NCBI GenBank assembly: GCA_002269645.1
Contig: NIVC01000140.1
Location: forward strand, 558,001 to 622,000
DNA from: Macrostomum lignano
Taxonomy: Eukaryota
Direction of reading: 5' to 3'
DNA length: 64,000 nucleotides
Numbering within the stretch: the first letter of the stretch is position 1; every line of letters starts with the position of its first letter. The notes under the pieces were generated by a model. That model saw nothing but the letters and a program-made list of their open reading frames with translations, searched no databases and was not told where the DNA came from. This document shows, piece after piece, positions 3,192 through 52,835 of this stretch. Made by a program: the position numbers and the translations under genes.

Positions 3192-4420
3192 TTGCCTCTT
3201 TAGTATACATTCAATACGCATTTAGGGTCAGCCAGTCGTACTCAAAGTTTTTCCTCCTGAGCGTTCACAAGAATGCAGCAGTGCAGTTTACTCAATGGGC
3301 AGGTGCAGTTCGGAGAAGTTCGAACTGAGCAGTGCAGTCCGAATCTTCCTGCGTACATTTGAGTTGCTTTTTTGCGCACGGGATTGTGCTGTGAGAATGC
3401 AAGTTTGAACGACTAAACGATGAAATTGAGTCACAGCATGACGCACAAGACAGCAGCTTCTTTCTTCTTTTCGATTAAAATTGTCATGGCTGCAGTTGAA
3501 AGTGCCATAAAAATAATTGCGGAATTCTTCCATCTCTTCGCCTCCAGTTTCTAAACCTTTTGGTTCTCATCTGCTACCTGACTCTCATCTCCAGCCATCA
3601 GCTGCCCCACCAGACCCTGAGTAGCCAATTATCCTCATCTGCTCATCTGACAGTTCATTGGAAACCGCACCTCGCACAGAAGTTGTGTTCTCATAGTCCA
3701 ATGAGAACGCAGGAGCTGAAAAAGTCCTAAATAAGAGTTCTCTGAGCCCTTGTATTTCAAGGGTTCACCGCAATGTTAAATGAAAGTAAGCAAGCAGTTT
3801 GTGAGGAGAGACGTCTGGCCTCACAATGCAGTGCTCGAACTGCTCACAGAGATTTAATTTCTATTTTTGTCTCTTTGCCAAGATGGAAGTTCAGTCATTA
3901 ATGTGCGCAGCTGCAGAAAAAGCGGTTACAGAGGCCGTTGTCACCTGATCTGAGCAGCTGAGGCCATGAAAATTAAACAATTCTAGTAGAAAGGAAGCTG
4001 CAAGGTGACTGGCATGCTACTCTCAGTAGTTACTAACATAATTATTGATTATTTATTTATCATCTCAAGTCCCTTGCGATGATACAGCTACAAAGGAGAG
4101 AACTTTAAAAAAGTTTAGACTGAACTTGGCAGCCCCTAGGCAGTCTGCGTTCTTTGTAACTACCTGTAACAGACTGCACAGGTACGCTTTGGTTGGATTG
4201 TGCGCCTCTGGTAACTGCAACGCGCCATGGCCAATCATCAGCCCAGACCGATTTACGTGCGATTCGGGATTTGAGAAGATGAAACTGGTTTGAGACGGCT
4301 TAGTCTAAAACTTTTTGTAGTTTTTTCCGTGAAAGAACAGAAGCATTGAAATATGCCTTGGATTGATCTTTGTATTCCCATCTTCATGTCACTCTCTTCT
4401 CTTCCTCTCTTCTCCTCTCC

Positions 4421-4727
4421 CAGCTGCTTCTGTTCCCAATGCGATAATCAGCTGTCCTTGTCTCCCAGCTCCTTCTGTTCCCGATGCGATAATCAGCTGT
4501 CCTTGTCTCCCAACTGCTTCTGTTCCCGATGCGATAATCAGCTGTCCTTGTCTCCCAGCTGCTTCTGTTCCCAATGCGATAATCAGCTGTCCTTGTCTCC
4601 CAGCTGCTTCTGTTCCCAATGCGATAATCAGCTGTCCTTGTCTCCCAGCTGCTTCTGTTCCCGATGCGATAATCAGCTGTCCTTGTCTCCCAGCTGCTTC
4701 TGTTCCCGATGCGATAATCAGCTGTCT
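4421..4727. repeat. 45-bp minisatellite, about 7 copies
   Basis: Unit cagctgcttctgttcccaatgcgataatcagctgtccttgtctcc. Confidence 0.95.
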
Positions 4728-4736
4728 AGCTGTCTG

Positions 4737-5010
4737 CAGCTCAGGCAGTCAATGTGCTGAAGGAAGTGTCCGGAGTACCGGCCTGGATTTGTTCCATCGA
4801 TGTGTTCTGGAGCGGCTGACTGAGGCCGACAGAGCCGCGTTCACAGGGCGCTGAGAGACTGACTGGTCGTCTCGCTAAAGGGTCCGCAGAGTTGGAAGTA
4901 AGGTTGCCAGTCTTACTGAGTCAGTCTATCGCGTCGGAGCCTTCAGGACGCACGCTGGGGGCTGGGCGTCTTAAATGGGAACCTGCACATCACCTGCTCG
5001 CTGTTTCACA
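4737..5010 (+). pseudogene. Deletion-riddled relic of the 3' part of the VWA-C1A protease gene
   Basis: gtgtccggagtaccgg, catcgatgtgttctgga, gctgactgaggccgacagagccgc and acctgcacatcacctgctcgctg align in order with 25260-25870; translation LTEADRAAF versus LTEAERAAF. Confidence 0.8.
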
Positions 5011-5280
5011 TATCGATCACAAACTGCGATCTTTTAATAGCAGCAAGATGCTGGCTGCTTGTTGACAGATTTGGAGAATTTTCAATAACTTCGGATTTCT
5101 CTTTTTGTAAACTTATCAATTTTGGCTTGCTGAAATAAATTTATATCTACGAGTGTATTTCTTTTGCTTATTTCTCAGTACCTGAAGCCGAGAAGAATCG
5201 CGCTATTGTATTGTAAGTAGTAATTTTTGCACTGTTTTTCGTGCGAATCACAGTGTGTTGTGTCCCAAGTCTATCAATTA

Positions 5281-6434
5281 GCACTGACTGGCACTGACTG
5301 GCTCTGACTGACACTGACTGGCTCTGACTGGCACTGACTGGCACTGACTGGCTCTAACTGGCACTGACTGGCTCTGACTGGCTCTGACTGGCTCTGACTG
5401 ACACTGACTGGCTCTGACTGGCACTGACTGGCACTGACTGGCTCTAACTGGCACTGACTGGCTCTGACTGGCTCTGACTGGCTCTGACTGACACTGACTG
5501 GCTCTGACTGGCACTGACTGGCACTGACTGGCTCTAACTGGCACTGACTGGCTCTGACTGGCTCTGACTGGCTCTGACTGACACTGACTGGCTCTGACTG
5601 GCACTGACTGGCACTGACTGGCTCTAACTGGCACTGACTGGCTCTGACTGGCTCTGACTGGCTCTGACTGACACTGACTGGCTCTGACTGGCACTGACTG
5701 GCACTGACTGGCTCTAACTGGCACTGACTGGCTCTGACTGGCTCTGACTGGCTCTGACTGACACTGACTGGCTCTGACTGGCACTGACTGGCTCTGACTG
5801 GCACTGACTGGCACTGACTGGCTCTAACTGGCTCTGACTGGCACTGACTGGCTCTAACTGGCTCTGACTGGCTCTGACTGGCTCTAACTGGCACTGACTG
5901 GCTCTAACTGGCTCTGACTGGCTCTAACTGGCACTGACTGGCTCTAACTGGCACTGACTGGCTCTAACTGGCACTGACTGGCTCTAACTGGCTCTGACTG
6001 GCTCTAACTGGCACTGACTGGCTCTAACTGGCTCTGACTGGCTCTAACTGGCACTGACTGGCTCTAACTGGCTCTGACTGGCTCTGACTGACACTGACTG
6101 GCTCTGACTGGCACTGACTGGCTCTGACTGGCACTGACTGGCTCTGACTGGCACTGACTGGCTCTGACTGGCTCTGACTGGCTCTGACTGGCTCTGACTG
6201 GCTCTGACTGGCTCTGACTGGCTCTGACTGGCTCTGACTGGCTCTGACTGGCTCTGACTGGCACTGACTGGCACTGACTGGCACTGACTGGCACTGACTG
6301 GCACTGACTGGCTCTGACTGGCTCTGACTGGCACTGACTGGCACTGACTGGCACTGACTGGCACTGACTGGCACTGACTGGCACTGACTGGCACTGACTG
6401 GCACTAACTGGCACTGACTGGCACTGACTGGCAC
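5281..6434. repeat. 10-bp satellite (gcactgactg/gctctgactg) with a 90-bp higher-order repeat in its left part
   Basis: Variant unit acactgactg recurs at 5311, 5401, 5491, 5581, 5671 and 5761. Confidence 0.95.
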
Positions 6435-7639
6435 TTTCCAGTATCCGAGAGATAATCAAACATTCACTGGATTTAAAGAAAATAAATGAGAAAAGAAAAG
6501 TACAGATTTCGACAATGTATTCCTACTTTACCGGCCTTCCACTTTTCTGAGGAACAAAGTATACTATCTGCTTCTATCATTTAGATTTTTGGATTTTGTT
6601 GTGGAATGAAAACATGGTAAAACGGAGACAGGGTCCCTGACGTATTTCTCTATGCATTTCGGACGTTTCAGATGCTGCAAAGACCATCAGTAGCAGCGGC
6701 AGCGCAATGCAATTTCTGACGGGTATCTTCTGCTGGGAAAACACAGTTTGCTGGTGTTGTGACACGGCCGTTGAACCGATCGTGTGCTTCCCAGTTATTC
6801 CCAAGAAATTCAGAGCAGTGAGCACTTGATGGAGTCAGTCGCCCTGGCCGGACTGACTTCGGAATCTGATCGTTCGTCTCTATGACTTTAGAGACGTGGT
6901 CAGTCCGTCCCTATGACTGTCCCGTACAATATGCAGGGTCACCCTCGAAGCAAACAAGGCTGCATGGCCATTGCCACTGTTGTATCCTCGTACTCGTAGA
7001 ATTGATGGGCGAGGTCGCCGCAAAATGGCACGCAAACTGAAAGCCAATTTTCAGGTTAGGAGCGAAGGCACTTTCTCTGCCCGCTGCCCACATACGAGCT
7101 CGTATCTCCTTATATTTGAGTCCACTCACTTTTAGCCCTAGGGTCTGAAGATCCACGAGCTCAAGCCAGGTCGAAAATTACACTAAAACCAGCAGCCAAT
7201 GAGAAGGCAGAAGAGAGCACAGGCAGCTGGGTGTTGACAGCTGGGGGCCGGGTCAGCCAATCACAGCAGAATGGGGGAGTGGGGTGGTCGCAGGTCTGGT
7301 GTGTAAACAACTTAGAGGGGCAGAGAAAATGGGGTGGGGCACAATCAAGTTAGCAGCTTAGGGGGCGCAGAGAGAAAGAAACGTGTTGCAGTGCAGTGCC
7401 GGGCAACCTTGACTCAGAGCCAGAGGTTGCTCATCAGTGCACCCGGGCACAGCGCTGCAAAAAAGACTTGCTTTGATTTATTTCGGTATTAAAACTTGAA
7501 AATTATAAGCTGAACTTTATCGGCTATCAAGAAGACTCCAGACCTAAAAACTCGAATGTACATACAGAATTGTTTATCAAAGCGCAAAAAGCTAAAAGCT
7601 TAACAGAAGCTTTATCAAATGCAATTTTCAAGGCGCTGA

Positions 7640-7745
7640 AGGCGAGTGATGCAATGCTGCATTAGTGAGGTGAAGGCGAATGATGCAATGCTGCATAGTG
7701 AGGTTGAGGCGAATGATGCAATGTACACTGCAGAGGTGAAGGCGC
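7640..7745. repeat. 32-33-bp minisatellite (gatgcaatgctgcattagtgaggtgaaggc), about 3 copies
   Basis: Same family as the arrays at 21770, 32146, 45745 and 49700. Confidence 0.85.
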
Positions 7746-11545: not shown

Positions 11546-11790
11546 CAGAGAGAAATGAGAAGAGATAAGAGAGAAAAGATAAAAGAAGAGAAAGGAAAGA
11601 TAAGAGAGCAAAGACGAGAGAGAAAAGAGGTGAGGGAAGAGACGAGAGAAGAGGGGAGAGATGAGAGAGTAGAGGAGAGAGTTAAGAGAAGAGAGAAAAG
11701 AATAGAAAGGAGAAGGAAGATAAGAGAGAAGAGGGGTGAGAGGAGAGAGGAGAGACAAGGGACGAGAGAGATGAGAGGAAACAAAGAGAC
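10620..11790. repeat. Purine-rich (GA)n / low-complexity tract
   Basis: Almost only A and G on the + strand, with pure (GA)n runs near 11380-11540. Confidence 0.95.
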
Positions 11791-13031
11791 GATAGAAATT
11801 TTAAAGGATCCAAGGGACATAGGTAGAGTCAGGGAGAGACCAGAGTTTAGCTATATATGTTTTAGAGTCAGACAGACATTGCCTAACATTCTGCGCAGTA
11901 CCCCAGCCAACAATGTCTCAAACCCTAATTTTACACGTATGTGCTCCATTTTATGTCTACCTCTATCCTACTAACTATTAACAAGTTTTTGTTTGTGTAT
12001 GGCCTTAGATTTCAGAATACATGCAAAAGTAGTTCCGGGTATTGGAATTCCCCGGGTTCAAAATCCGCGGGTTTCAACAGCTTGTACCGTATAAGAAAAA
12101 ATCTGTAAACAATTTAACTTGAGAACAATAAAAGGTTCATAAATAGAAAGAATAGATTACACTTCTGCGGCGCTTAAGTAAACAAATTCAAAAATTAGAA
12201 CAATTTTACGTAAGAAAAACAAAATTCATCTTTCAAAACAACAGCAAAAGCAGTTTTTAAAATAAATTTCCTCAACATAAATTGCCTGTTCTTAACTGGG
12301 ATTCAACTGCCTCTTCCATTTGTGTTCGTTTGCCTTTCCCAGAAGATCAGCTCGAAACAATCGGCGAGCCCAGTCTTCGCACCTGAAAGATGCAAGAGCG
12401 TTTGAACACTAAAGTGATTCTAAAATCAAATAAGAAAACTCATACCACAGGAGTCAACTATGTGTTCTCTGAAATACATGCCTTGCACTGTCTCCAGAAG
12501 GAAATGCATGAAATTGCGTCAAATGCGGGCACCTGTAGGCATAGGAATTGCAGCCATAAGCTGCGCACTGGGCTCGAGATTTTGTCATGATAACACTGCA
12601 CTGCTTTCACCGCAGAACGCAGAATGTTTGTTGACCTACAACGCATGGTTACTAAAAAACACAAGACAAAAATCACAAGCCCATGCGAGTGATATCGTCT
12701 ATGGTGATTCTTCTCCATACTACTTTCCCACAGCTTCACAGGAAGAATAGCACAAAGCGAAAATAATTTTGCATTGAGATTTTTTCTTCGGGGTGGCTGA
12801 ATGAGCATTCTGTGGTATTCTGTGCTCCCACCCCACTCCGCTATACGAGTTTAGGAGTTTAGGTATAGAATGAAATGATGCTGCTGCTTATCGATTTCTC
12901 GCTAGAGCAGTTTTGTACGCGAACTTTTGTAACACCTCTCGTATTAATAGCTTGCTAACTGGAAAAAGAATATATTGACAGTAATACTGCATATTTGCAG
13001 CAATCTGCTTTAAACTTTGCTAAAATAAATC

Positions 13032-21355: not shown

Positions 21356-21769
21356 TTAGCCAAGTCACTTGCAGCGGCGCCGCTTCCACAGCTGGCTGGG
21401 CCCGGTTGACCTGATGCTCCAGGATGAAGCGGAGCTGCTGGATAGCATTAAGCCGCGCCGAGTGGAGACCTGGCGCCTGAGGCGCAGAGGCAGAAGTCTG
21501 CGCCTCCACTGCCGAGCTGCGCGATTACTTTGTAGGTGCGCGCCGGCTCCGCTGCCAGATGAGCGGCCTGCACTTTTATAGTGAGTGTACTTTTACACTG
21601 CAATGTACTTTCTTTTCCCTAAGGCATCTCTGTGATTCGCAGTTATTTATCGAATTTGATTAATGTTATTTTAATGTTTACTGACTTGTAATTTTTTTAA
21701 TGCAATGTGCTGTGAATAGAATCTGCCATGACTGCAAGTGGTTAACCATTAGTTTATTAGCTGCATTAG

Positions 21770-22800
21770 TGTTGTGAAGGCGACTGATGTAATGCTGCAT
21801 TAGTGAGGTAAAGGCGACTGATGCAATGCTGCATTAGTGTTGTGAATGCGACTGATGTGATGCTGCATTAGTGTTGTGAATGCGACTGATGTGATGCTGC
21901 ATTAGTGAGGTGAATGCGACTGATGTGATGCTGCATTAGTGTTGTGAATGCGACTGATGTGATGCTGCATTAGTGAGGTGAATGCGACTGATGTGATGCT
22001 GCATTAGTGTTGTGAATGCGACTGATGTGATGCTGCATTAGTGAGGTGAATGCGACTGATGTGATGCTGCATTAGTGTTGTGAAGGTGAATGATGTAAAG
22101 CTGCATTAGTGTTGTGAAGGTAAATGATGTAAAGCTGCATTAGTGTTGTGAAGGTAAATGATGTAAAGCTGCATTAGTGTTGTGAAGGCGACTGATGTGA
22201 TGCTGCATTAGTGAGGTAAAGGCGACTGATGTGATGCTGCATTAGTGAGGTGAAGGCGACTGATGTGAAGCTGCATTAGTGAGGTGAAGGCGACTGATGT
22301 GATGCTGCATTAGTGAGGTGAAGGCGACTGATGTGATGCTGCATTAGTGAGGTGAATGCGACTGATGTGATGCTGCATTAGTGAGGTGAAGGTGAATGAT
22401 GTGATGCTGCATTAGTGAGGTGAAGGTGAATGATGTGATGCTGCATTAGTGAGGTGAAGGTGAATGATGTGATGCTGCATAGTGAGGTGAAGGTGAATGA
22501 TGTGATGCTGCATTAGTGAGGTGGGGTGAATGATGTGATGCTGCATTAGTGAGGTGAATGCGACTGATGTGATGCTGCATTAGTGAGGTGAAGGTGAATG
22601 ATGTGATGCTGCATAGTGAGGTGAAGGTGAATGATGTGATGCTGCATTAGTGAGGTGGGGTGAATGATGTGATGCTGCATTAGTGAGGTGGGGTGAATGA
22701 TGTGATGCTGCATTAGTGAGGTGGGGTGAATGATGTGATGCTGCATTAGTGAGGTGGGGTGAATGATGTGATGCTGCACTGCAGAGGTGAAGGCGCACCC
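21770..22800. repeat. 32-33-bp minisatellite, about 31 copies, upstream of VWA-C1A copy 1
   Basis: Unit gatgtgatgctgcattagtgaggtgaaggcga(ct). Confidence 0.95.
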
Positions 22801-23443
22801 GGTCAGCACTCACTCAATCTCGCACGCCCAGTGCATGATACTGTTTTAAATTCTAAATAATTTTCCGGATATTTTAACTCAATAAAACAAACGTTAATTT
22901 CACTGGAAGGAAATAAACGTTTGAATGCTATTTGTTAAAGCAAATTAGAAATATTTTCCATTTACCTTAACTATTGGGCCTAATTGAATATTCCTATTTT
23001 CTATTTGCTGCGATAATTATTTTATACAAAATTTGAATTATTCCAGTCAGTGCTGCCAGTTCTCCTTCAGTTAAGCCACAACTTGAGCCAAAAATTGAAA
23101 GGATTCTCAATGGTAAGCTGCACGAATTTTCTGTTTTCCGAAATTTAGGAAAAATTAAACAGAATGAACTGGTTGATCTTCCTCTCTTGAACAGAGTGAA
23201 ATATTTTTTCATTATCATAATTTCTATATCTTAAATTCACTAAGTACAAATATTTTATAATAAAGTTATTTATGTATCAGATGCTAAAATAGAATTAAAA
23301 GTACAAGAATACAAGAAATAATTAATGGGTTCAGAAGCACCTTTATAGAATTTATGAATTGAAATCATATCATTATACAATGAACCACATAAATGAGCAC
23401 TACTTCATGATCTACAAATTTTAAACACACATTTTTAGCTACA

Positions 23444-33712: not shown

Positions 33713-36070
33713 ATGTTGTGCATGTCAGGCTTTTCACCGCAACTGCAGGAGCGTCACGTGAGGTCGGTGCTCACCGGAGCTTTGCTGGACGTCTCCGGCT
33801 CCATGCAGCGCAGCTTCGACAGCCAGCAGGCAGCGGGCGCGGCCAGCTACGCATCGAAGAACAAGTGGGTCCGCTCCATCTTCAAGGTGGCCGACCAACT
33901 GGTCAAGCACGACGTGTCACCGACCAACCCGGTGTTCCTGGGCGGTGTGGGAGCTGAGTCACAGCCCACAGTGTTCGACATCCTGGCCTCACTGGAGGCT
34001 GGGCAGAGAAAAAGGGAAGAGCTGGAGAGGAGAAAACCAGAGCTGGACCGTAAAAAGCAAGAGCTGGAGAGGGGAAAGCAAGAACTGGACAGGAAAAAGC
34101 AGGAGCTGGAAGATGAGGCCAGAAGAAAGAAGCAGGAGTATGAAGACCGAATAAAGAGGTTAGAATCTTCTTCAAAGCAATACATCATTGACCGAGCTCT
34201 CTCCATCCTTGAGTCCAGTGGAGCGCCGAGAGTTCGGAGTTGGGCCACAGCGAACATGGTGGACAGGAATATAAGCGACAAGCGAACTGCCTGCGTCATT
34301 CTGGACGCTCTGCAAACCGACTCGGAATTCAAACGAAAAGTTGTTGATGATTATCTGCCTGAGCAGTGCCGAAATTTTCACTGGGCGAGCGAAGCCGCGA
34401 GAGTCACTTCTGGATTTCTTGGTTCGTTTGTGGGGTCTGAAGACCCGTTGTTGGGGACGGACTCCGAAGTTGAAGCTGTTGTGAGAAAGTGTGACAACTT
34501 CCTTAACGACGAATTTCGACGTAAAGAAGAGGCAGAGAGAAGGAGAGCGGAGAATGAGCTGAGGCCATTGAGTCTAAAACTCACTGCACTGGCTGAAGAT
34601 CTCAGAGCACTGACTGCAGATCTGACTGCAAATCTCACTGCACTGACTCCTTCGTCCGTCTTTGCCCCAGATGAAGCTCAGAGAATCCTGCGCTCCTGTA
34701 ACGAAGACGCTGAGCTGACTGACGAGCGAATCACGGAGCTCCTGGACACCATCGAGCCCTTCATCTACGGAGGCACCCCGCTGATGGAGGCTCTCGAGAC
34801 ATCGAAAAATATTTTTTGTAGCGAGGAACACAAAACTGAGTTCAAGCTGCTCTTCATCCTTTCCGATGGAGAGCCGTCGGACAGCAGCGGCAGCAGTGAC
34901 ACTGAGATGCGACAGGAACTGCACAACCTCGGGGTGACGGTCGTGTCCTGCTTCATCACGGACACAGACATCTCTGACCCGCGACGGCTCTACAGCACTA
35001 TCGACAGCGGCTGGGATCGACCTGCTGAATTTATGTTCCACATGGCCTCGACAGTCTCCACCCAGAAGATCCCCAGAACCCTGTTCATCCGAAAGGGCTG
35101 GACAATCGACACCGACAACAATGAGACCCGACTGTTCTTCCAGATCAATCACCCCGACCTCATCGATGAGGTCTGCGACATCGCCAAGAGCTGCGTGTGC
35201 TCGCAGGACGCGCTGTCGGACGTGCTGGCCGACGTGGACCTCGACCTGTACATCAACAGGGCCAACGAGGGCTTCGAGCCGCAGCGACAGTCGGAGCTCA
35301 CCTGCTATGCAGTCGCGTCGGCGACCGTCATGCACCTGAGCATGCTCAGGGTTGTGGGTCGGGACGGCGGATATCCGGACTTCTTCCAGCTCAGAGACAA
35401 GATCGTCGCTCAGTTCGGACGGCGCAGAGCCCGCACAGTCGAGGTGCTGCGGACAGTGTGTCCGGAGTACCGGCTGCAGTGCAAGGAGGTCGATGAGAGA
35501 GCCGCGCTGGACGCCGTCATCGCCAAGCGGGCAGTCGTGGCGAGGTTCCACCTCACTAAGCGTGAGTGGGACAACTTCAGGCAGTTCTTTAAGCAGAATC
35601 CCGGAGGCATTCTCACCCAGGCCGACCTCACCGGTGGAGACTCTGAAGCAAAGCTGCTCGGACACGCGGTGGTGCTGATGAGCTTCGACAGACACAGCCT
35701 GAGGCTGATGAACTCGTGGGGCTCCGGCTGGGGCGACGGCGGCTTCTTCAGAGTGCAGAGCGCAGCCGCGCTCAGAATAAAGTTCATCGATGTGTTCTGG
35801 ACCGAGGAGCAGCTGACTGAGGCTGAGAGAGCCGCCTTCAGAGAGCGCGGACTGGGCGTTGCAGAGAGACTGTTTAAATCTCTGAAGGGTCTGCAGACAT
35901 GCAAGTACAGATGCTCGCTGTGTGGCGTTGAGTCTCTGGTGTCGGAGTTCTCGGGACACACGCTGGAGGCCAGGTGTCCCAGGTGTTTGGGCAGCTTCGA
36001 TGCGAACCTGGCGGGCAGCGACCTTGCGCTGAACCTGTACCTCACCTCGCTGCTGCACAAAAAGGACTAA
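33713..36070 (+). CDS. Split-VWA + papain-like protease + Zn-ribbon protein, copy 2 (785 aa)
   Basis: Same motifs as copy 1 (DVSGSM, GGTPL, ILSDG, TCYA, GHAV, NSWG, CSLC..CPRC), all intact. Confidence 0.9.
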   Translation: MLCMSGFSPQLQERHVRSVLTGALLDVSGSMQRSFDSQQAAGAASYASKNKWVRSIFKVADQLVKHDVSPTNPVFLGGVGAESQPTVFDILASLEAGQRKREELERRKPELDRKKQELERGKQELDRKKQELEDEARRKKQEYEDRIKRLESSSKQYIIDRALSILESSGAPRVRSWATANMVDRNISDKRTACVILDALQTDSEFKRKVVDDYLPEQCRNFHWASEAARVTSGFLGSFVGSEDPLLGTDSEVEAVVRKCDNFLNDEFRRKEEAERRRAENELRPLSLKLTALAEDLRALTADLTANLTALTPSSVFAPDEAQRILRSCNEDAELTDERITELLDTIEPFIYGGTPLMEALETSKNIFCSEEHKTEFKLLFILSDGEPSDSSGSSDTEMRQELHNLGVTVVSCFITDTDISDPRRLYSTIDSGWDRPAEFMFHMASTVSTQKIPRTLFIRKGWTIDTDNNETRLFFQINHPDLIDEVCDIAKSCVCSQDALSDVLADVDLDLYINRANEGFEPQRQSELTCYAVASATVMHLSMLRVVGRDGGYPDFFQLRDKIVAQFGRRRARTVEVLRTVCPEYRLQCKEVDERAALDAVIAKRAVVARFHLTKREWDNFRQFFKQNPGGILTQADLTGGDSEAKLLGHAVVLMSFDRHSLRLMNSWGSGWGDGGFFRVQSAAALRIKFIDVFWTEEQLTEAERAAFRERGLGVAERLFKSLKGLQTCKYRCSLCGVESLVSEFSGHTLEARCPRCLGSFDANLAGSDLALNLYLTSLLHKKD

Positions 36071-41795: not shown

Positions 41796-43064
41796 TCACG
41801 ACGAGAAGGTAAATTTGTCGTTGGCATTGGAAAATACGGCTACTCCAAGGGCTTTGTTCAAGCGAGTCACTAAGCTTCTGACCATTGCGTAGCATTCGCC
41901 TAGAAATTGATTCTCGAACTCCAGCTCATTGCGTGACGTCTTTTCACTTGATCGGTTGATCATTATTTTCAACTCGGCATTTTCCTTCTCCAGCTGAGCG
42001 ATGCGGTCATCCTTCTCAACGCCTTCCGTCTCCAGCTGAGCGATGCGGTCGTCCTTCTCAAGGCCTTCCGTCTCCAGCTGAGCGATGCGGTCGTCCTTCT
42101 CAAGGCCTTCCGTCTCCAGCTGAGCGATGCGGTCGTCCTTCTCAAGGCCTTCCGTCTCCAGCTGAGCAATGCGGTCGTCCTTCTCAACGCCTTCCGTCTC
42201 CAGCTGAGCGATGCGGTCGTCCCTCTCCACGTCTCGAGTGAAAAACTGCAGAGCAGTCCGCAACGCCTTGATGGCTGCCTCGTCCACCTGGATGGTCCTG
42301 GCAGTGTCGCAGCCGATCCGCAGCATTCTGTGGACAGAGTCCAGCTTCCTGCGGCAGGCACCAGCGCACCTGGCTCGCTCTCGCCGCTCCTTCAAATCCG
42401 TCGCTGTTTTCACGGCCGCGCTGCCCAGCAAAATGCCTGTGGCAAAGCTGGCGATATAAGCAGCTCCGCCATCGAAGAAGTGAAGTGCCGCGATGCCGAG
42501 GGCTCCGACTGTTGCGCAAGCAATCAGCCCGAGCAGCTGTGCTTGGCCTGCCTGCCTGCTCGAACCCTTCTGTATCTGACTCAGCCCGTCAGACAGAGTT
42601 TTGGTGAGCTCCTGCGACTTGCTCAGCTGACCGGTGAAGGTCGCGAGCGATTCCGAGAAATCACAGGCCATTGTGTGCAGCTGGTCCAGCTTTTCGCAGA
42701 GCTGTTTGAGCAAATCTGGCTCAATATTGGCCTGGATCCTGATCTTCCAGAATGTCTCAAACTCATCGATCTGCCTTTCAAAACTGTTTATCCAAACCTC
42801 TAGGTGAGATCCCGTTACCTGCACTCTCTTGAGCTCTTGCTTCAGTTTCTTGAGAAAGAGACTCAGTCCGTCAAGTTGTGGCTGCAGTTCCTCCCGATGA
42901 GGCTCCTTGGCCAGCTTCAGCTGCTCCACCTCGCTGGCTTGAGCCTTGGTGAGCTCAGTAACCTTCAGCAGCTCATCACTCTTACCTCCGATAGACCTCA
43001 GCGTCTGGACGGCATCTCGAATTCCCGCCAGAACGTCGCTGATCTCTGCAAGCTTCTCCGTCAT
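41796..43064 (-). CDS. Coiled-coil/hydrophobic-hairpin protein, copy B (422 aa from MTEKL), alpha-pore-forming-toxin-like
   Basis: Intact ORF; about 170 aa of amphipathic helices, an approximately 40-aa hydrophobic hairpin (LLGLIACATVGALGIAALHFFDGGAAYIASFATGILLGSAAV), further helices, then six 14-aa repeats. Start assigned by alignment to copy C (MAEKLGEIGDVLSGI). Confidence 0.8.
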   Translation of the reverse strand: MTEKLAEISDVLAGIRDAVQTLRSIGGKSDELLKVTELTKAQASEVEQLKLAKEPHREELQPQLDGLSLFLKKLKQELKRVQVTGSHLEVWINSFERQIDEFETFWKIRIQANIEPDLLKQLCEKLDQLHTMACDFSESLATFTGQLSKSQELTKTLSDGLSQIQKGSSRQAGQAQLLGLIACATVGALGIAALHFFDGGAAYIASFATGILLGSAAVKTATDLKERRERARCAGACRRKLDSVHRMLRIGCDTARTIQVDEAAIKALRTALQFFTRDVERDDRIAQLETEGVEKDDRIAQLETEGLEKDDRIAQLETEGLEKDDRIAQLETEGLEKDDRIAQLETEGVEKDDRIAQLEKENAELKIMINRSSEKTSRNELEFENQFLGECYAMVRSLVTRLNKALGVAVFSNANDKFTFSS

Positions 43065-44129
43065 TTTTACTTCTGCTTTTAACTGCCTACAGAGCCGGAG
43101 CAACTTTAACTGAAATTTGAGTTCCACAGCCTTTATGCAGATCCAATGCGCAGAGCCAGTGAGGCAGCTCAATGTACGTTCGTTTCACGTTTGAAGTTCC
43201 GAAGTCCGAAATTCCGTCTGGTCCCTCACTGTGCCGCCTGGGCCGCTCGTATCAGAAAAGTCTGTCGCAAAATGAAAACAGCAGCCAAGACGCCAGTGAA
43301 TGTTTTGTGGAGACGCCTGCTATCGGTTGCCCTCGTAAACTCATAGTTGGTTGTCATGCCCACCTGCACTGCCCCTCTCTTACTTTTCTCTTGGCGGGCT
43401 TTTCACTACCGCTGCACACAGGGTTATCGCAGTCCCTGTCTGACCGCAGATCATGGAGTCAGTCAGATAAGCCCATCTGAGCAGCAGTGCAGCAGGGAGA
43501 CATTCAGGGTGTCAAAACTTCTGCATTTGCTGCTATGCGGTGTCACTGAGGTCTCACTCACTCACTGCTCATGACAGATTTTGGACGCTGTGAAGCTGAA
43601 GCCTTTGCCCCACTGCATCAGCCTATGCAGGTGCTCATAATTGCTTCCAAAATTTCACGTACACTAGAAAAAGATCAGAGGCGAGCTGCTGACTGCTGCC
43701 GCTTCAAAGACTGTGCATTTGATCTTCTATATGAATAAAAGTTTTTAGTCGGCAGCAAAGCAAGAACTTGCATGTGGATAATACAGTAAATATTAACCCT
43801 CTCAGCCTTCCCTAATCATCGTACTTTACTCTATCATCGTACTAAGAAAATCATTAGGTAATCAAAATTTAAATAAATGAGAGGTAGCTTTGTACAAATA
43901 TATTTGGTTGTGCCGTCTTAGTGCGAGCTACAACTAATAACTAATGCCAATTTATTGCTGCTATTGATCTGTTGTATCCCTAGCTTATACATAGCTAGGT
44001 TGGACCCTTAAACGTTGTAAATCATAAACTTTATAGTCATGGTAGTTAGCAATTTTAAAATGAAGTCAAGAAAATAGCAATTTAAGTTGTTAAATCATTG
44101 CCAACTTTCCAAATAGATTTCCCGATTGT

Positions 44130-44892: not shown

Positions 44893-45744
44893 ACAATGCA
44901 ATATGCTTTTTTCCTCGAAAGCATTTCCGTGGATCGCAGTTGTATTGTACGTTTAATATTCTTTAATGTTCACTGTCTTGTTTGTAAAGCACCGTACAGT
45001 GAATGGAACCTGCCATGACTGCAAGTGGTTTACCCTGTGTATTCGGATTACATGTACGTTTATTTGCAGTGGATGAAAATAGCATTGCGTATTGACTTCT
45101 GCTGAAATTTATTTTGAATGCACTGAAAGTTCTTTCGTTTGTGTTGGCCGTGATCAAAACTTTCTGCTTGATAGCGGCTGGAAACAGCGCCCCAGTACAG
45201 CTGTGCCTTTGTCAGCCAACAGGTTCCTCCGCTCTGACACCTAGACTCAGCACTATATATCATTTTCGCATGGGAGACTTTTTTGTACATAGCTGCTCCG
45301 TATTGGCTGAGACCAGGGTCGAATCCTCAGCTTTTGCTGGTTCGACCAGTTGCATTGGTTGGAAATGAGTTCAAAGCAGGCCGATAACTGATCACCTCAC
45401 GCGGCCACTCAGTGTTGGCAAGCAGATTTGCTGCATATTTTAGCGCTCTTTGCGAATGTCTGTGCAGAGGCTCTGCGACACGGGCATGAGTCGAACGAAG
45501 CCTTGAAGCCGCTCTTACAGTTGATTTTACTGTCAGTTGATGTTCTTGTCAGCACTTCGAGCTTCAAGTTGCCAGCTGCAACAGCCATTGTTCAACAAGA
45601 CTTGTGTGCGATTTTCTCATTAGAAAGTGCGTCAAGTTTTCTGCAGAAATGAGTTTTATTTGTTCGGAAATCTTCTGGTCAAACTCAAGTACCACTAGGA
45701 ACACTTAGCATGCCAGCGTGAATGATGTAATGATGAATTGATGA

Positions 45745-46325
45745 GATGAAGGCGAATGATGCAATGCTGCATTAGTGAGGTGAATGCGAATGATGCAATG
45801 CTGCATTAGTGAGGTGAATGCGAATGATGCAATGCTGCATTAGTGAGGTGAATGCGAATGATGCAATGCTGCATTAGTGAGGTGAATGCGAATGATGCAA
45901 TGCTGCATTAGTGAGGTGAAGGCGAGTGATGCAATGCTGCATTAGTGAGGTGGAGGCGAGTGATGCAATGCTGCATTAGTGAGGTGAAGGCGAGTGATGC
46001 AATGCTGCATTAGTGAGGTGAAGGCGAGTGATGCAATGCTGCATTAGTGAGGTGGAGGCAGTGATGCAATGCTGCATTAGTGAGGTGGAGGCAGTGATGC
46101 AATGCTGCATTAGTGAGGTGAAGGCAGTGATGCAATGCTGCATTAGTGAGGTGAAGGCGAGTGATGCAATGCTGCATTAGTGAGGTGGAGGCAGTGATGC
46201 AATGCTGCATTAGTGAGGTGGAGGCAGTGATGCAATGCTGCATTAGTGAGGTGAAGGCAGTGATGCAATGCTGCATTAGTGAGGTGAAGGCGAGTGATGC
46301 AATGCTGCATAGTGAGGTGAAGGTC
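45745..46325. repeat. 32-33-bp minisatellite, about 18 copies
   Basis: Followed by a diverged copy of the VWA-C1A upstream module (46330-46931). Confidence 0.9.
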
Positions 46326-47127
46326 ATTCGTCAGCGCTCGCTCAGGCTCGGACAACCAGTACATTGTATAGTTTTAAATTCTGAATAATTTTTCCGGATA
46401 TTTTAACTTAAAAACAACAAAACAAATGGTTTGCTAAAAGAAGTATACTACGAGCATTAAATATTTTCTGCCAGAAGCAGAATGGAAATGTTTTTTTCTA
46501 TTTTTACGATATGTCGCTTTCTTGAATATTGATTTTTTCATCAGTTGCGATAAAAAATTAATACACAATTTAAATTAATTTAGTTGTCTTCTTCAAGGGC
46601 AGCCACAACTCGAGAAAAAGCAGAACTGGATTCTCAATGGTAAGCTGCTGGAAATTTCTGCTTTCCAAAAAATGCTGTGTCCAGAATTCTCTCGCTGTTC
46701 TTCCTCTCTGGAAAAGGATAAATTATTTTTCATTATCATAACTCCTATATATTCCAAATTCATTAAGTGTATTTATATTGCAACAAAAATAATTTGTGTC
46801 AGATATTTAAACGAGATAATAAATATAACATTATAAGAAATAGGAAATGGGTTGAGAAGCACCTTTTTCGAGTTTATGAATTGCAATCATATAGTTATAC
46901 AACGAGCGAATCGATTTTTCATATTCTAAACCATTCTTATTTGATTCTGCGTGCAGGATTGCTGATCTGGCACGCCCAAGCGTGCAGAATTGATGTTGTC
47001 TATGGCAAAATATCCTTTAGGTCTAATGCATCTTACGTGCAGGATTGCACTTTATTTTTAGACAACAAGAAAACAACGAGTGAAAATTGGTTAATATCAT
47101 TACTATTTTTTCGCTTGCGATCAGATG

Positions 47128-48097
47128 CTACTCAAATACAAATTCAATGACGTTGGTGTCACCATTGGCTCGAATCTTCAAATTCTTCCGATTTTCCGGA
47201 ATAACTCGCACACAGCGCACCGAGCCCGACGTAGGATCGTTGATAACGTCAACTAGGTCACTTGCCTCAGTGCCTACAACTTGAGGGTCGGCCGTAGTAG
47301 CCACCTCCACGGCAGCCGTTAGTTGATGGCTCATAGCACAGATCGCTTGCTCTCGTTTATTCCCTCGTCGAATGTAGCGCTCAACGGATGCACCTCGCTT
47401 GTGGCCAGTCACTTTAGCGATAGTTTCGACATTAAATCCAGCGTCGTGAAGTTCTGTGATTACAGTTGCACGCACACAATGCGCAGTGTATGGCTTGGAC
47501 AATCCGGCGGACGTAGAAATTTTCTTCATCAGAGGCCCAAGGGTGTTGACTCCTACTGCACTCTTGCTGTACGAGCTCGTACCACTTACCAGATGAACGA
47601 AAGTTAGCGTTTGGTCGCAGAAAGAAGTCCACTCCGTTCCATCCTTCAACTTCGGTGACCTTTTGCTTGTACAGTCTGAACGCCTCAACTGGGCATTTGG
47701 CAGAATCTCCCTTTGACACCATCAACGCTTGCTTGTTGTCAACCATGACGGCGACGCTGGTAGAACCATGTAGATTCTTTGAATCTCCCTGAACAAGCTC
47801 AATCGCGTAGAGTCCATTGGCGAGCCGCTTCTCACAAAACCGATCAAACCTCAAACCACGCAACCATTCACGGCCTCTATTCCCATAGTAATAAATGACG
47901 TTAAAGTATACTTCCTCTTGAAGACGCACCGGATTCGACCGATCGAAGTATTTACCGAGCTTCTTCAGGTCGTCACTCTCAATAGCATCGTAGTGCTTCA
48001 CTCTTCCTCCAGATCGAAGGAAAGCGTTGCAAATGTTTTTATAGTGGCAACTAGCTTTCAATTGTAATCTCCTTTCGTTACCCCCTCCCCTCTTCAT
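47128..48097 (-). pseudogene. DUF3504/Crypton-type tyrosine recombinase, left copy, frameshifted
   Basis: Joining the two overlapping ORFs gives YYGNRGRE..SKN..CPV..FFLRP..KWY/VGVNTLG..YTAHCVRAT..VTGHK..VERY, with catalytic R, K, HxxR, H and Y present; 10-bp insertion within 47569-47582. Confidence 0.85.
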
Positions 48098-48537
48098 CTC
48101 CAGCGTGCAAGATTGATTTTGTCTATGGTTAAAATGTGGGGGCTTCGCCCCCACGCCCCCAGCGGGGGCTCTGCCCCCGCACCCCCGCTAGCAGCGGGTA
48201 ATGTCTATAGTAATATCAATTATAACCTCCTTTTTTGGGCAGAATTTAAAATGGAAGAATCAAATAAGAATGAGATTCATGCACGCCAACTCGTGCGTCT
48301 ATGGCAAAGAGCACTCGTGCGCTTCTCGTGCCATAGACGCACGAGTTGGCGTGCATGAATCTCATTCTTATTTGATTCTTCCATTTTAAATTCTGCCCAA
48401 AAAAGGAGGTTATAATTGATATTACTATAGACATTACCCGCTGCTAGCGGGGGTGCGGGGGCAGAGCCCCCGCTGGGGGCGTGGGGGCTTCGCCCCCACA
48501 TTTTAACCATAGACAAAATCAATCTTGCACGCTGGAG

Positions 48538-49507
48538 ATGAAGAGGGGAGGGGGTAACGAAAGGAGATTACAATTGAAAGCTAGTTGCCACTATAAAAAC
48601 ATTTGCAACGCTTTCCTTCGATCTGGAGGAAGAGTGAAGCACTACGATGCTATTGAGAGTGACGACCTGAAGAAGCTCGGTAAATACTTCGATCGGTCGA
48701 ATCCGGTGCGTCTTCAAGAGGAAGTATACTTTAACGTCATTTATTACTATGGGAATAGAGGCCGTGAATGGTTGCGTGGTTTGAGGTTTGATCGGTTTTG
48801 TGAGAAGCGGCTCGCCAATGGACTCTACGCGATTGAGCTTGTTCAGGGAGATTCAAAGAATCTACATGGTTCTACCAGCGTCGCCGTCATGGTTGACAAC
48901 AAGCAAGCGTTGATGGTGTCAAAGGGAGATTCTGCCAAATGCCCAGTTGAGGCGTTCAGACTGTACAAGCAAAAGGTCACCGAAGTTGAAGGATGGAACG
49001 GAGTGGACTTCTTTCTGCGACCAAACGCTAACTTTCGTTCATCTGGTAAGTGGTACGAGCTCGTACAGCAAGAGTGCAGTAGGAGTCAACACCCTTGGGC
49101 CTCTGATGAAGAAAATTTCTACGTCCGCCGGATTGTCCAAGCCATACACTGCGCATTGTGTGCGTGCAACTGTAATCACAGAACTTCACGACGCTGGATT
49201 TAATGTCGAAACTATCGCTAAAGTGACTGGCCACAAGCGAGGTGCATCCGTTGAGCGCTACATTCGACGAGGGAATAAACGAGAGCAAGCGATCTGTGCT
49301 ATGAGCCATCAACTAACGGCTGCCGTGGAGGTGGCTACTACGGCCGACCCTCAAGTTGTAGGCACTGAGGCAAGTGACCTAGTTGACGTTATCAACGATC
49401 CTACGTCGGGCTCGGTGCGCTGTGTGCGAGTTATTCCGGAAAATCGGAAGAATTTGAAGATTCGAGCCAATGGTGACACCAACGTCATTGAATTTGTATT
49501 TGAGTAG
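48538..49507 (+). pseudogene. DUF3504/Crypton-type tyrosine recombinase, right copy, frameshifted
   Basis: Mirror of the left copy with the same 10-bp insertion at 49057-49066; removing it gives an open frame of about 319 aa from ATG 48538. Confidence 0.85.
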
Positions 49508-49699
49508 CATCTGATCGCAAGCGAAAAAATAGTAATGATATTAACCAATTTTCACTCGTTGTTTTCTTGTTGTCTAAAAATAAAGTGCAATCCTGCACGT
49601 AAGATGCATTAGACCTAAAGGATATTTTGCCATAGACAACATCAATTCTGCACGCTTGGGCGTGCCAGATCAGCAATCCTGCACGCAGAATCAAATAAG

Positions 49700-49862
49700 A
49701 ATGATGTGATGCTGCATTAGTGAGGTGGGGTGAATGATGTGATGCTGCATTAGTGAGGTGGGGTGAATGATGTGATGCTGCATTAGTGAGGTGGGGTGAA
49801 TGATGTGATGCTGCATTAGTGAGGTGGGGTGAATGATGTGATGCTGCACTGCAGAGGTGAAG
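49700..49862. repeat. 33-bp minisatellite, about 5 copies, truncated by the palindrome
   Basis: Begins mid-unit at gaatg|atgtgatgctgc. Confidence 0.9.
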
Positions 49863-50519: not shown

Positions 50520-52835
50520 GTGCATGTCAAGCTGAACTTTCCACCGCAACTGCAGGAGCGTCACGTGAGGTCGGTGCTCACCGGAGCTCTGCTGGACGTC
50601 TCCGGCTCCATGCAGCGCAGCTTCGACCGTCAGCAGGCAGCGGGCGCAGCCAGCTACGCATCGAAGAACAGGTGGGTCCGCTCCATCTTCCAGGTGGCCG
50701 ACCAGCTGGTCGAGCACGACGTGTCACCGACCAACCAGGTGTTCCTGGGCGGTGTGGGAGCTGAGTCACAGCCCACAGTGTTCGACATCTTGGCCTCACT
50801 GGAGGCTGGGCAGAGAAAAAAGCCAGAGCTGGAGAGGAAAAAGAAAGAACTGGAGAGGAGAAAGCAAGAGCTGGAAGATGAGGCCAGAAGAAAGAAGCAG
50901 GAGTATGAAGACCGAATAAAGAGGTTAGAATCTTCTTCAAAGCAATACATCATTGACCGAGCTCTCTCCATCCTTGAGTCCAGTGGAGCGCCGAGAGTTC
51001 GGAGTTGGGCCACAGCGAACATGGTGGACAGGAATATAAGAGACAAGCGAACTGCCTGCGTCATTCTGGACGCTCTGCAAACCGACTCGGAATTCAAACG
51101 AAAAGTTGTTGATGATTATCTGCCTGAGCAGTGCCGAAATTTTCACTGGGCGAGCGAAGCCGCGAGAGTCACTTCTGGATTTCTTGGTTCGTTTGTGGGG
51201 TCAGAAGACCCGTTGTTGGGGACGGACTCCGAAGTTAGAGCTGTTGTGAACAAATGTGAAAACTTCCTTAACGCCAAAAAGAAGCAGAAAGAAACAGAAG
51301 TAAAAGCAGAAGTAGAAGCAGAAGCAGAAGCTGAAAGAAGGAGAGCGGAGAATGAGTTGAGGGCATTGAGTCCTTTGACTCAGTTGACTCCTTTGTCCGT
51401 CTTTGCCCCAGATGAAGCTCAGAAAATCCTGCACTCCTGCAACGAAGACGCTGAGCTGACTGACGAGCGAATCACGGAGCTCCTGGACACCATCGAGCCC
51501 TTCATCTACGGAGGCACCCCGCTGATGGAGGCTCTCGAGACATCGAAAAATATTTTTTGTAGCGAGAAACGCAAAACTGAGTTCAAGCTGCTCTTCATCC
51601 TTTCTGATGGAGAGCCGGCGGACAGCAGCGGCAGCCGAGACACTGAGATGCGACAGAAACTGCACAATCTCGGGGTGACGGTCGTGTCCTGCTTCATCAC
51701 GGACACTGACATCTCTGACCCGCGACGGCTCTACAGCACACTCGACAGCGGCTGGGATCGACCTGCTGAATTTATGTTCCACATGGCCTCGACAGTCTCC
51801 ACCCAGAAGGTCCCCAGAACCCTGTTCATCCGAAAAGGCTGGACAATCGACACCGACAACAATGAGACCCGACTGTTCTTCCAGATCAATCACCCCGACC
51901 TCATCGATGAGGTCTGCGACATCGCCAAGAGCTGCGTGTGCTCGCAGGACGCGCTGTCGGACGTGCTGGCCGACGTGGACCTCGACCTGTACATCAACAG
52001 GGCCAACGAGGGCTTCGAGCCGCAGCGACAGTCGGAGCTCACCTGCTATGCAGTCGCGTCGGCGACCGTCATGCACCTGAGCATGCTCAGGGTTGTGGGT
52101 CGGGACGGCGGATATCCGGACTTCTTCCAGCTCAGAGACGAGATCGTCACTCAGTTCGGACAGCGCAGAGCCCGCACAGTCGAGGTGCTGCGGACAGTGT
52201 GCCCGGAGTACCGGCTGCAGTGCAAGGAGGTCGATGAGAGAGCCGCGCTGGACGCCGTCATCGCCAAGCGGCCAGTCGTGGCCACATTCGGCCTCACTAA
52301 GAGCGAGTGGGGCAGCTTCAAGCAGTTCTTCAAGCAGAATCCCGAAGGCATTCTCACTCAGTCCGACCTCACCGGTGGACTCGGAGCTCGGGGAGACTCT
52401 GAGCTGTTCGGACACGCGGTGGTGCTGATGAGCTTCGACAGACACAGCCTGAGGCTGATGAACTCGTGGGGCTCCGGCTGGGGCGACGGCGGCTTCTTCA
52501 GAGTGCAGAGCGCAGCCGTGCTCAGGATGAAGTTCATCGATGTGTTCTGGACCGAGGAGCAGCTGACTGAGGCCGAGAGAGCCGCCTTCAGAGAGCGCGG
52601 ACCGGGCGTCGCTGAAAAGCTGTTCGCCTCACTGAAGGGTCTGCAGACATGCATGTACAGGTGCCCGCTGTGCGGTGAGGAGTCTCTGGTGTCGGAGTTC
52701 TCGGGACACACGCTGGAGGCCAGGTGTCCCAAATGCAGGCGCAGCTTCGATGCGAACCTTGCGGGCAGCGACCTGGCGCTGAACCTGTACCTCACCTCGC
52801 TGCTGCACAAAGGGAATAAGAAGACACAGCAGTAG
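50520..52835 (+). CDS. Split-VWA + papain-like protease + Zn-ribbon protein, copy 3 (about 760-770 aa)
   Basis: All motifs intact. The ATGs used in copies 1 and 2 are out of frame here (5-bp indel), so the coding exon probably starts at the acceptor ctgcag|GAG at 50556. Confidence 0.85.
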   Translation: MHVKLNFPPQLQERHVRSVLTGALLDVSGSMQRSFDRQQAAGAASYASKNRWVRSIFQVADQLVEHDVSPTNQVFLGGVGAESQPTVFDILASLEAGQRKKPELERKKKELERRKQELEDEARRKKQEYEDRIKRLESSSKQYIIDRALSILESSGAPRVRSWATANMVDRNIRDKRTACVILDALQTDSEFKRKVVDDYLPEQCRNFHWASEAARVTSGFLGSFVGSEDPLLGTDSEVRAVVNKCENFLNAKKKQKETEVKAEVEAEAEAERRRAENELRALSPLTQLTPLSVFAPDEAQKILHSCNEDAELTDERITELLDTIEPFIYGGTPLMEALETSKNIFCSEKRKTEFKLLFILSDGEPADSSGSRDTEMRQKLHNLGVTVVSCFITDTDISDPRRLYSTLDSGWDRPAEFMFHMASTVSTQKVPRTLFIRKGWTIDTDNNETRLFFQINHPDLIDEVCDIAKSCVCSQDALSDVLADVDLDLYINRANEGFEPQRQSELTCYAVASATVMHLSMLRVVGRDGGYPDFFQLRDEIVTQFGQRRARTVEVLRTVCPEYRLQCKEVDERAALDAVIAKRPVVATFGLTKSEWGSFKQFFKQNPEGILTQSDLTGGLGARGDSELFGHAVVLMSFDRHSLRLMNSWGSGWGDGGFFRVQSAAVLRMKFIDVFWTEEQLTEAERAAFRERGPGVAEKLFASLKGLQTCMYRCPLCGEESLVSEFSGHTLEARCPKCRRSFDANLAGSDLALNLYLTSLLHKGNKKTQQ

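Follow-up and report, generated by a model that had tools for sequence, protein, structure and literature searches.

Animal Cryptons of the CryptonA type encode a DUF3504 protein, the combination of Phage_integrase and DUF3504 serves as their signature, and they have been reported to lack terminal repeats (PMC3212892, PMC13465315); non-autonomous Cryptons are already known (PMC3212892). Here we analyzed a stretch of 64,000 nucleotides from the flatworm Macrostomum lignano (assembly GCA_002269645.1, contig NIVC01000140.1, positions 558,001 to 622,000 of the forward strand; hereafter the window, numbered from its first letter), which carries a palindrome of ~2.8 kb made of two head-to-head units that sequence comparison assigns to a CryptonA-type tyrosine recombinase (YR) transposon. 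A head-to-head Crypton dimer is not described in PMC3212892 or PMC13465315. Like CryptonA, the element has one YR gene and no reverse transcriptase (RT), measures ~1.9 kb and occurs in multiple copies with different flanks; its short boundary direct repeats represent crossover or target microhomology rather than a target-site duplication, and non-autonomous deletion derivatives exist. It differs in its ends: the left end bears a ~100-nt imperfect hairpin, there is a 17–19-nt inverted repeat with one copy at the terminus and the other immediately internal to the hairpin, and direct motifs lie in subterminal positions.

Palindromes nucleated by inverted repeats, of which the Tetrahymena rDNA palindrome is one, form a second group for comparison. 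Both palindromes and short inverted repeats are sites at which breaks, fold-back priming and inverted duplications arise, as described for an interrupted palindrome in E. coli (PMC3315005), for fold-back priming in yeast (PMC10622511) and in a review (PMC7999016). The palindrome in the window shares with these cases a native inverted repeat at the axis, a non-palindromic spacer and a microhomology join; whereas they duplicate the chromosome outward and leave inverted flanks, the arms here stop at the transposon ends and the flanks are unrelated. Telomere resolvases (ResT, TelK, TelN) are also YR-fold enzymes, with palindromic junctions and hairpin ends as substrates and products. However, the native site described here is imperfect with conserved mismatches, the direct-repeat boundaries of the monomers are typical of circle integration, and the YR of the window gave no match to the telomere-resolvase family, its Pfam matches being Phage_integrase and DUF3504 only, apart from one sub-threshold match to GCHY-1 that appears to be due to chance. 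DIRS-like YR retrotransposons combine a YR with inverted terminal repeats, as does this element, but the 1.9-kb element has no RT/RNase H or methyltransferase and bears far shorter repeats. Assignment to the DIRS, Ngaro or parvovirus-like classes was rejected because the element has neither RT nor Rep: the HUH Rep nickase of rolling-hairpin (parvovirus-like) replicons was not found in it, nor was a second open reading frame (ORF).

Geometry and content of the palindrome

The arms of the inverted repeat (46932–48306 and 48329–49703, 1375 nt each) match base by base except at three adjacent positions (48144–48146 against 48489–48491), and their complementarity ends abruptly at 46932 and at 49703. 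The mismatched bases form the loop of a local hairpin, GTGGGGGC-TTC-GCCCCCAC, which reads identically on the + strand in both arms; the difference is a single event, the inversion of this 3-nt loop, and corresponds to the one discordant codon in otherwise matching ORF translations that an earlier note on this DNA had pointed out. In the orientation of the element the ancestral loop is GAA, as found in the left arm (48136–48154, − strand) and in three other copies of the family (L003, L004 and L005, introduced below). By this comparison the flipped loop of the right arm is the derived state, because both the left arm and the intact relatives have GAA.

The 17-mer CATTCTTATTTGATTCT lies on the + strand at 46932 and 48363 and on the − strand at 48256 and 49687, and its pairs delimit two 1341-bp units (46932–48272 and 48363–49703) separated by a 90-nt middle. 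The middle folds into a 34-bp stem with a 22-nt loop containing GCAC-TC-GTGC (−50.8 kcal/mol, z = −17). This geometry is beyond chance, and the window contains no Ns. The earlier note had recognized the 1341-bp units, with perfect 17-bp inverted repeats around one YR gene, as well as the folded spacer, and both descriptions hold, with the addition that the gene is split by a frameshift. Its unit bounded by terminal inverted repeats is real but is not the whole element, which extends one hairpin further to the left, and the hairpin of the spacer is not specific to the dimer: it represents the half that survives of an imperfect palindrome of ~100 nt found at the left end of every monomer. No further copies of the element and no solo hairpins were found elsewhere within the 64-kb window.

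We compared the two units with four other loci of the same family (family 1) from the public M. lignano assembly, namely L001 (contig NIVC01004419.1), L003, L004 and L005, the last being another deletion derivative. The element spans ~1.9 kb between defined ends and contains one ORF, encoding a YR related to DUF3504 and Phage_integrase, and no RT or other transposition enzyme. It has boundary repeats, and its mobility is indicated by the unrelated flanks at these four loci and in the window and by a locus without the insertion (L006, the empty site). All four of the other family-1 loci are monomers with identical termini and different flanks, and copies of four related lineages are monomers as well. 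The arms of the palindrome are ~98% identical to annotated M. lignano copies. Independent copies of the family differ by ~1%.

Each monomer is arranged as flank-A(A/T)TG, the ~100-nt hairpin (L-arm, GCGAAGC tip, R-arm), the 17-mer, the YR gene, the inverted 17-mer ending in AATG, and flank. Aligned, the ends of family 1 read flank-(G)AATG / GTTAGGATTCTTGAACGCT-AACGAGTGCGTCATTGGCAAAAGCACGAGTGCG-CGAAG-CGCACGAGTGCTCTTTGCCATAGACGCACGAGTT-GGCGTGCATGAATCT / CATTCTTATTTGATTCT ... gene ... AGAATCAAATAAGAATG / flank. The left ~100 nt form an imperfect palindrome (−39.4 kcal/mol, z = −7.8), and the 17-mer pair is present in every family-1 monomer (at 9892/11686 in L001, and in L003, L004 and L005). In contrast to the absence of terminal inverted repeats regarded as a CryptonA trait, every copy combines a perfect 17-nt inverted repeat with a ~100-nt terminal palindrome. 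The boundary direct repeats are (G)AATG at both ends in L003, L004 and L005, ATTG/AATG in L001, CAATG/CATTG in family 2 (see below) and CAATG in the other lineages, with GATTG as the target in the empty site; repeats of the AATG type are as expected for circle-mediated Crypton integration. The subterminal 32-nt motifs (Table 1) are candidate arm-binding sites of the recombinase, and family 2 has analogous subterminal motifs, CCATAGAC...TTCCTGCACG.

Within each unit the single YR reading frame is split by a frameshift into ORFs of 240 and 186 aa, and in silico removal of a 10-bp insertion, GAGCTCGTAC, restores a frame of 319 aa. In Pfam this frame matched PF00589 Phage_integrase above the cut-off (2.8e-7) and PF12012 DUF3504 just under it (3.2e-6; 27.7 bits against a 29.7-bit cut-off), and its relatives carry PF12012 plus PF00589. 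The nearest protein is BOX15_Mlig018289g4 of M. lignano (501 aa, 97% identity). Together with the Pfam matches, this bears out the earlier view of two Crypton-type YR units standing head to head at a hairpin-forming joint. Full-length copies of the YR have 501–502 aa; relative to full-length L001, both arms lack ~544 bp and hence ~180 N-terminal aa. HCVR and GH..ERY motifs, putative parts of the catalytic R-H-R-Y tetrad, were seen by eye in the full-length YR P0001 and in the window frames, the window copies being truncated and frameshifted.

The 544-bp deletion and the 10-bp insertion occur in both arms, and neither is present in L001, L003 or L004. Because both lesions are common to them, the two arms are, as judged from sequence, one and the same dead, non-autonomous derivative, and the palindromic dimer is unable to make the recombinase. 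The repaired YR that the earlier note had proposed to assay would still lack its N-terminal domain owing to the deletion. An intron in place of the frameshift was considered and rejected: the GT...AG at 49047–49069 is 23 nt long and in the wrong phase, and GAGCTCGTAC is an insertion because intact copies do not have these 10 bp. The insertion converts ..TGGTAC/AGC.. into a 14-bp palindrome, GTACGAGCTCGTAC (47569–47582 and 49053–49066), and looks like a repair or excision footprint, with GTAC duplicated around GAGCTC.

Origin of the palindrome

The left copy runs on the − strand from the right end (...AGAATCAAATAAGAATG) through the body, the 17-mer, the R-arm and the hairpin tip to ~7 nt of the L-arm, with 98.3% identity to L001 10609–11702 and 95–98% to L001 9839–10064. 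It tracks the monomer alignment through ...GAAGCGCACGAGTGCTCTTTGCCATAGAC, and its + strand ends as ...GCGCTTC-TCGTGC, which corresponds to the native sequence with 6 nt lost from the tip, leading into the first bases of L-arm'. The bases after ...TCGTGC are CATAGAC..., as pairing of the terminal TGC with the GCA of ...TATGGCA would give. The 22-nt centre is thus native element sequence, consisting of the end of R-arm', the tip with its 6-nt deletion and the first bases of L-arm'; this match to the native element excludes foreign or adapter DNA at the centre. The axis of the palindrome (48317.5) lies about 5 nt off the native hairpin tip, and the divergent L-arm is gone from the centre, replaced by the perfect complement of the R-arm, the 17-mer and the body. 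By this reading the join has a 3-nt microhomology, in keeping with end joining if two copies took part and with fold-back priming if there was only one. It is possible that the join arose by fold-back at the native hairpin; such a step would be an ordinary hairpin-nucleated rearrangement and would not count as evidence for a hairpin-capped replicative intermediate or for telomere-resolvase-like chemistry.

VWA/papain-like genes are arrayed in tandem across the window, and in front of each stand a 33/34-bp minisatellite and an 'A' region of ~600 bp. To the left of the palindrome stands a full minisatellite followed by an A region (A_div) that is 96.9% identical to L006 6547–7771 and shares just 77–80% identity with the remaining A regions of the window. 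The empty site in L006 reads ...ttctaaac/CAATCtcagatact and continues straight into the gene, whereas the window reads ...ttctaaac/CATTCttatttg; the left insertion target in the empty site is CAATC (GATTG). On the right side, four terminal minisatellite repeats and an A region recur at 22641–22795 in an intact unit, and the sequence continues through the A region and gene of a B-type unit (94.5% identity to 22629–24120). Both outer ends of the palindrome are thus canonical right-end/target junctions at A(A/T)TG motifs in two non-neighbouring targets, and the palindrome occupies the place of a gene unit and its surroundings. Insertion of a dimer as a unit at one target was rejected because the flanks are non-contiguous: one is a paralogous 5' region and the other a minisatellite, belonging to unlike unit types, and in the empty site the sequence runs on into the gene. 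Chromosome-scale fold-back was rejected as well, the flanks not being inverted copies of each other.

The explanation we favour, at roughly even confidence, is that two copies of a single dead, internally deleted CryptonA were fused head to head by a join within the left-end hairpin. Two insertions of the same derivative, in inverted orientation, would have been separated by about one gene unit, and the second of them probably arose by recent re-insertion nearby. Their hairpins would have offered fragile, cruciform-prone break sites, and, since a palindrome equals its reverse complement, no other stretch would let inverted copies line up in parallel. The broken hairpins may then have been joined by microhomology-mediated end joining or template switch, with deletion of the DNA between them, and the asymmetric 22-nt centre, including the 6-nt tip deletion, would stabilize the resulting long palindrome. 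What is missing at the locus is the L-arm half of both hairpins and everything between the two targets, and other hairpin-centred rearrangements in the family (the tip deletion of L005 and the L/L'-type hairpin of L007/L008) support this explanation. Several observations weigh against it. A single event over 1375 nt separates the arms, compared with ~1% among independent copies, which fits two old insertions less well than it fits the duplication of a single copy, a daughter insertion of very recent date or gene conversion between the arms. No monomeric copy of this derivative was present among the retrieved loci, the M. lignano genome not having been searched by nucleotide sequence. In addition, L006 is a paralogue or homeologue (96.9%) rather than a proven allele, the deleted DNA between the two targets is deduced from paralogous units, and the palindrome is taken here from an assembly.

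The near-identity of the arms is the main support for a different origin, in which fold-back priming, or a strand switch mediated by inverted repeats, would have converted a single copy into an inverted dimer at its own hairpin, in situ or on an excised circle, and its right ends would then have recombined into two chromosomal A(A/T)TG sites through a recombinase supplied in trans. As one route, a head-to-head dimer circle could integrate and later lose DNA by site-specific deletion up to a pseudo-site; such a pseudo-site would resemble the start of the L-arm, GTTAGGATT, as the outward reading of the left flank, GTTTAGAAT, does. The central join is exactly as fold-back priming with TGC:GCA pairing predicts, and on either outer side a precise right end meets a target-like motif. 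A head-to-tail tandem arrangement with a right-end/hairpin junction is seen in a related element, consistent with circle integration (the circle junction expected for family 1, right end to L-arm, is ...AAGAATG/GTTAGGATTC), and the reciprocal kind of junction, the L/L'-type hairpin, occurs in family 2. We nevertheless consider this origin possible rather than probable: it requires several steps, none of them observed, other dimers are absent among the 4 family-1 and 3 family-2 loci, and plain fold-back synthesis would continue into the flank and produce inverted flanks, of which there are none. An artefact of assembly or library preparation, be it a chimeric palindromic long read, a fold-back formed during multiple displacement amplification or a mis-join of two copy-bearing loci, is very unlikely. 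Palindromic chimeras are a known artefact of long reads and of multiple displacement amplification, and the locus lies within a tandem, minisatellite-rich array that is hard to assemble; yet the centre is element sequence and not adapter, each arm stops precisely where the element has its right end and abuts a different target-like flank, and a real loop inversion distinguishes the arms and thus rules out one molecule read twice. A mis-join would also require overlap across ~100 nt at ~80% identity.

The earlier note had proposed that the palindromic dimer is a regular replicative form, the opened and integrated state of a hairpin-capped linear intermediate produced by telomere-resolvase-like YR chemistry and fold-back replication. 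The conserved terminal hairpin of the family, the position of the palindrome axis at this hairpin and the coincidence of both outer ends with element ends speak for such a form. The other copies, however, are all monomers bounded by short direct A(A/T)TG repeats (the four family-1 copies and those of four related lineages), rather than dimers with the same centre, an outcome that the note itself had named as contrary to its proposal. Replication through a cap would be expected to perfect the native hairpin or to yield flip and flop versions of it, as in rolling-hairpin replicons, whereas the hairpin is imperfect, its mismatches are conserved and its orientation is the same in 4/4 family-1 monomers. 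The flanks are non-contiguous, the arms are dead copies and the protein matches Phage_integrase and DUF3504 only. This proposal is therefore not supported, and we rank it as the least probable of the explanations considered. Most probably the dimer arose by a one-off rearrangement and does not reflect a new mode of replication; it is probably not a normal form in the life cycle of the element but an unusual, incidental variant.

The left-end hairpin in five lineages

In a second M. lignano family (family 2), the protein is 54% identical to that of family 1, while the hairpin retains 88% nucleotide identity across ~104 nt. Its outer-stem sequences have diverged yet remain mutually complementary, and it possesses its own 17-mer pair and CAATG boundaries. 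Three further lineages, with 37–44% protein identity, share the layout: one from TARA marine scaffolds (L009–L012), one from Logan contigs (L013–L016) and one from ENA metagenome contigs (L017–L022). Each begins with an imperfect palindrome of 96–137 nt followed by a perfect inverted repeat, the partner of which lies at the 3' end and finishes in (C)AATG or TAAT; the repeat measures 17–19 nt in the Logan and ENA elements and about 10 nt in those from TARA. Across the five lineages the hairpin folds have z values of −7.8 to −14, and in 5/5 the gene-sense strand forms a GC-rich tip stem of 6 bp with a 3–4-nt loop, adjoined by a GA/GA 2x2 internal loop. The tip of families 1 and 2 carries the very stable GCGAAGC motif. 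This end architecture of the CryptonA clade is previously undescribed.

Structural variants of the hairpin were found in several copies. In L005 (5245–5312) the end hairpin lacks a 39-nt tip (...CATTGGCA/TAGACGC...), which constitutes another hairpin-centred deletion. The family-2 copies L007/L008 have a rearranged left end (2490–2900): the first hairpin consists of two L-type arms that are 95% complementary, without the GA mismatches and with an 86-nt insert at the tip, and further degenerate hairpin-plus-CATTG modules precede the body. Taken with the dimer, the tip deletion of L005 and the rearranged hairpins of L007/L008 point to the hairpin as a likely hotspot for structural change in the genomes of flatworms. 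In the TARA lineage, scaffold L009 (177–4243) contains a head-to-tail pair of 2030-bp units, which show 4 mismatches and meet at a right-end/hairpin junction, and L010–L012 contain one unit each, with the same 176 nt on the left as L009 and three different right flanks. This pattern is compatible with circle integration beside a resident copy or with the left part belonging to the element.

The hairpins resemble the attC sites of integrons and the attP site of CTX phage (PMC2727003, PMC5027507), which are imperfect palindromes whose sequence varies while the fold and the unpaired features are conserved; in the five lineages, too, fold and unpaired features are kept despite sequence divergence. 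The unpaired features of attC and attP mark one strand, and their counterpart here is the GA/GA 2x2 loop below the 6-bp tip stem. Unlike the present hairpins, attC and attP are bacterial, and their crossover takes place inside the folded site, whereas here the crossover (AATG) is at the outer foot of the hairpin. By analogy, and with low confidence, we raise the idea that the clade may use its left-end hairpin as a structure-specific site of recombination or replication, extruded as a cruciform or as a folded single strand, with GA/GA marking the strand; the palindrome would then be a fossil by-product of extrusion and processing of the hairpin in vivo.

The gene array around the palindrome and implications for Cryptons

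The coordinates of the palindrome, its flanks, the array and the left-end hairpins are listed in Table 1.

Table 1 Features of the window and of related loci (positions refer to the window unless a locus is named).
Feature	Position	Strand	Basis or remark
Left copy, non-autonomous CryptonA, family 1	46932..48328	-	match to L001
Right copy, same derivative	48329..49703	+	begins within R-arm (TGCCATAGAC...), ends at canonical right end ...AGAATCAAATAAGAATG
22-nt non-palindromic centre, AAGAGCACTCGTGCGCTTCTCG	48307..48328	.	matches L001 9839-9857
90-nt middle, two R-arms of the native hairpin, perfectly complementary	48273..48362	.	fold and monomer left ends
17-mer repeats	46932-46948 (right-end repeat of left copy, outer), 48256-48272, 48363-48379, 49687-49703		
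GC-rich mini-hairpin, loop flipped to TTC in right arm	48481..48499	+	arm comparison, relatives
Subterminal 32-nt motif (CCATAGAC..ATCAAT.CTGCACGCT)	46979-47010, 48102-48133, 48502-48533, 49625-49656		direct within each unit
YR pseudogene, left copy	47128..48097	-	N-terminal ~180 aa gone; 10-bp insertion at 47569-47582
YR pseudogene, right copy	48538..49507	+	deletion junction ~48600/48601; 10-bp insertion within 49053-49066
Left flank 'A_div', 5' region of X-type VWA/peptidase gene unit	46324..46931	+	ends ~60 bp short of expected gene start
Right flank, last ~4.5 repeats of 33-bp minisatellite, B-type unit	49699..49848	+	junction at GAATG of the repeat
33/34-bp minisatellite (GCTGCATTAGTGAGGTG...) before each gene unit	7637-7744, 21760-22795, 32143-33063, 45720-46323, 49699-49848		
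Intronless genes of 770-820 aa, tandem family	23444-25897, 33713-36070, 50520-52835; also L006 ~4120-6460		weak VWA, papain-like and zinc-ribbon matches
Left-end hairpins of five lineages	L001 9789-9908; L002 5789-5905; L009 177-300; L014 7-124; L020 80-221		

The array is organized as a higher-order repeat of ~24.7 kb with two unit types, and contains other minisatellites with units of 20, 42, 45 and 49 bp. No close annotated M. lignano protein was found for the 771-aa VWA/papain-like protein. Its best relatives (42–59%) are patchily distributed among corals (Montipora, Acropora), Owenia, a fish and many metagenome contigs. A coiled-coil host ORF (41796–43172, − strand) shares 94% identity with a protein of M. 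lignano, and it was through this ORF, not the 771-aa protein, that we reached the homeologous loci. The ORF at 61977–62873 contains an RNase H domain (Pfam, E = 1.6e-12) and is presumably part of a retroelement. Beside the Crypton copy in L001, starting 1 nt beyond its right end, lies an element of ~217 bp (11704–11920) with perfect 21-bp terminal inverted repeats (ATTCCCTAGATGGGCCACTCT), probably a miniature inverted-repeat transposable element.

Under the favoured fusion of two copies, the palindrome would be a dead-end rearrangement of two defective elements that removed or replaced one gene unit of the array. The conserved hairpin is of more interest than the palindrome itself. The end architecture of the clade gives exact boundaries for annotation and concrete substrates for tests of Crypton recombinases. 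If the hairpin does act as a structure-specific site, this would be the first such YR site in a transposon of eukaryotes, offering a handle on the mechanism of Cryptons.

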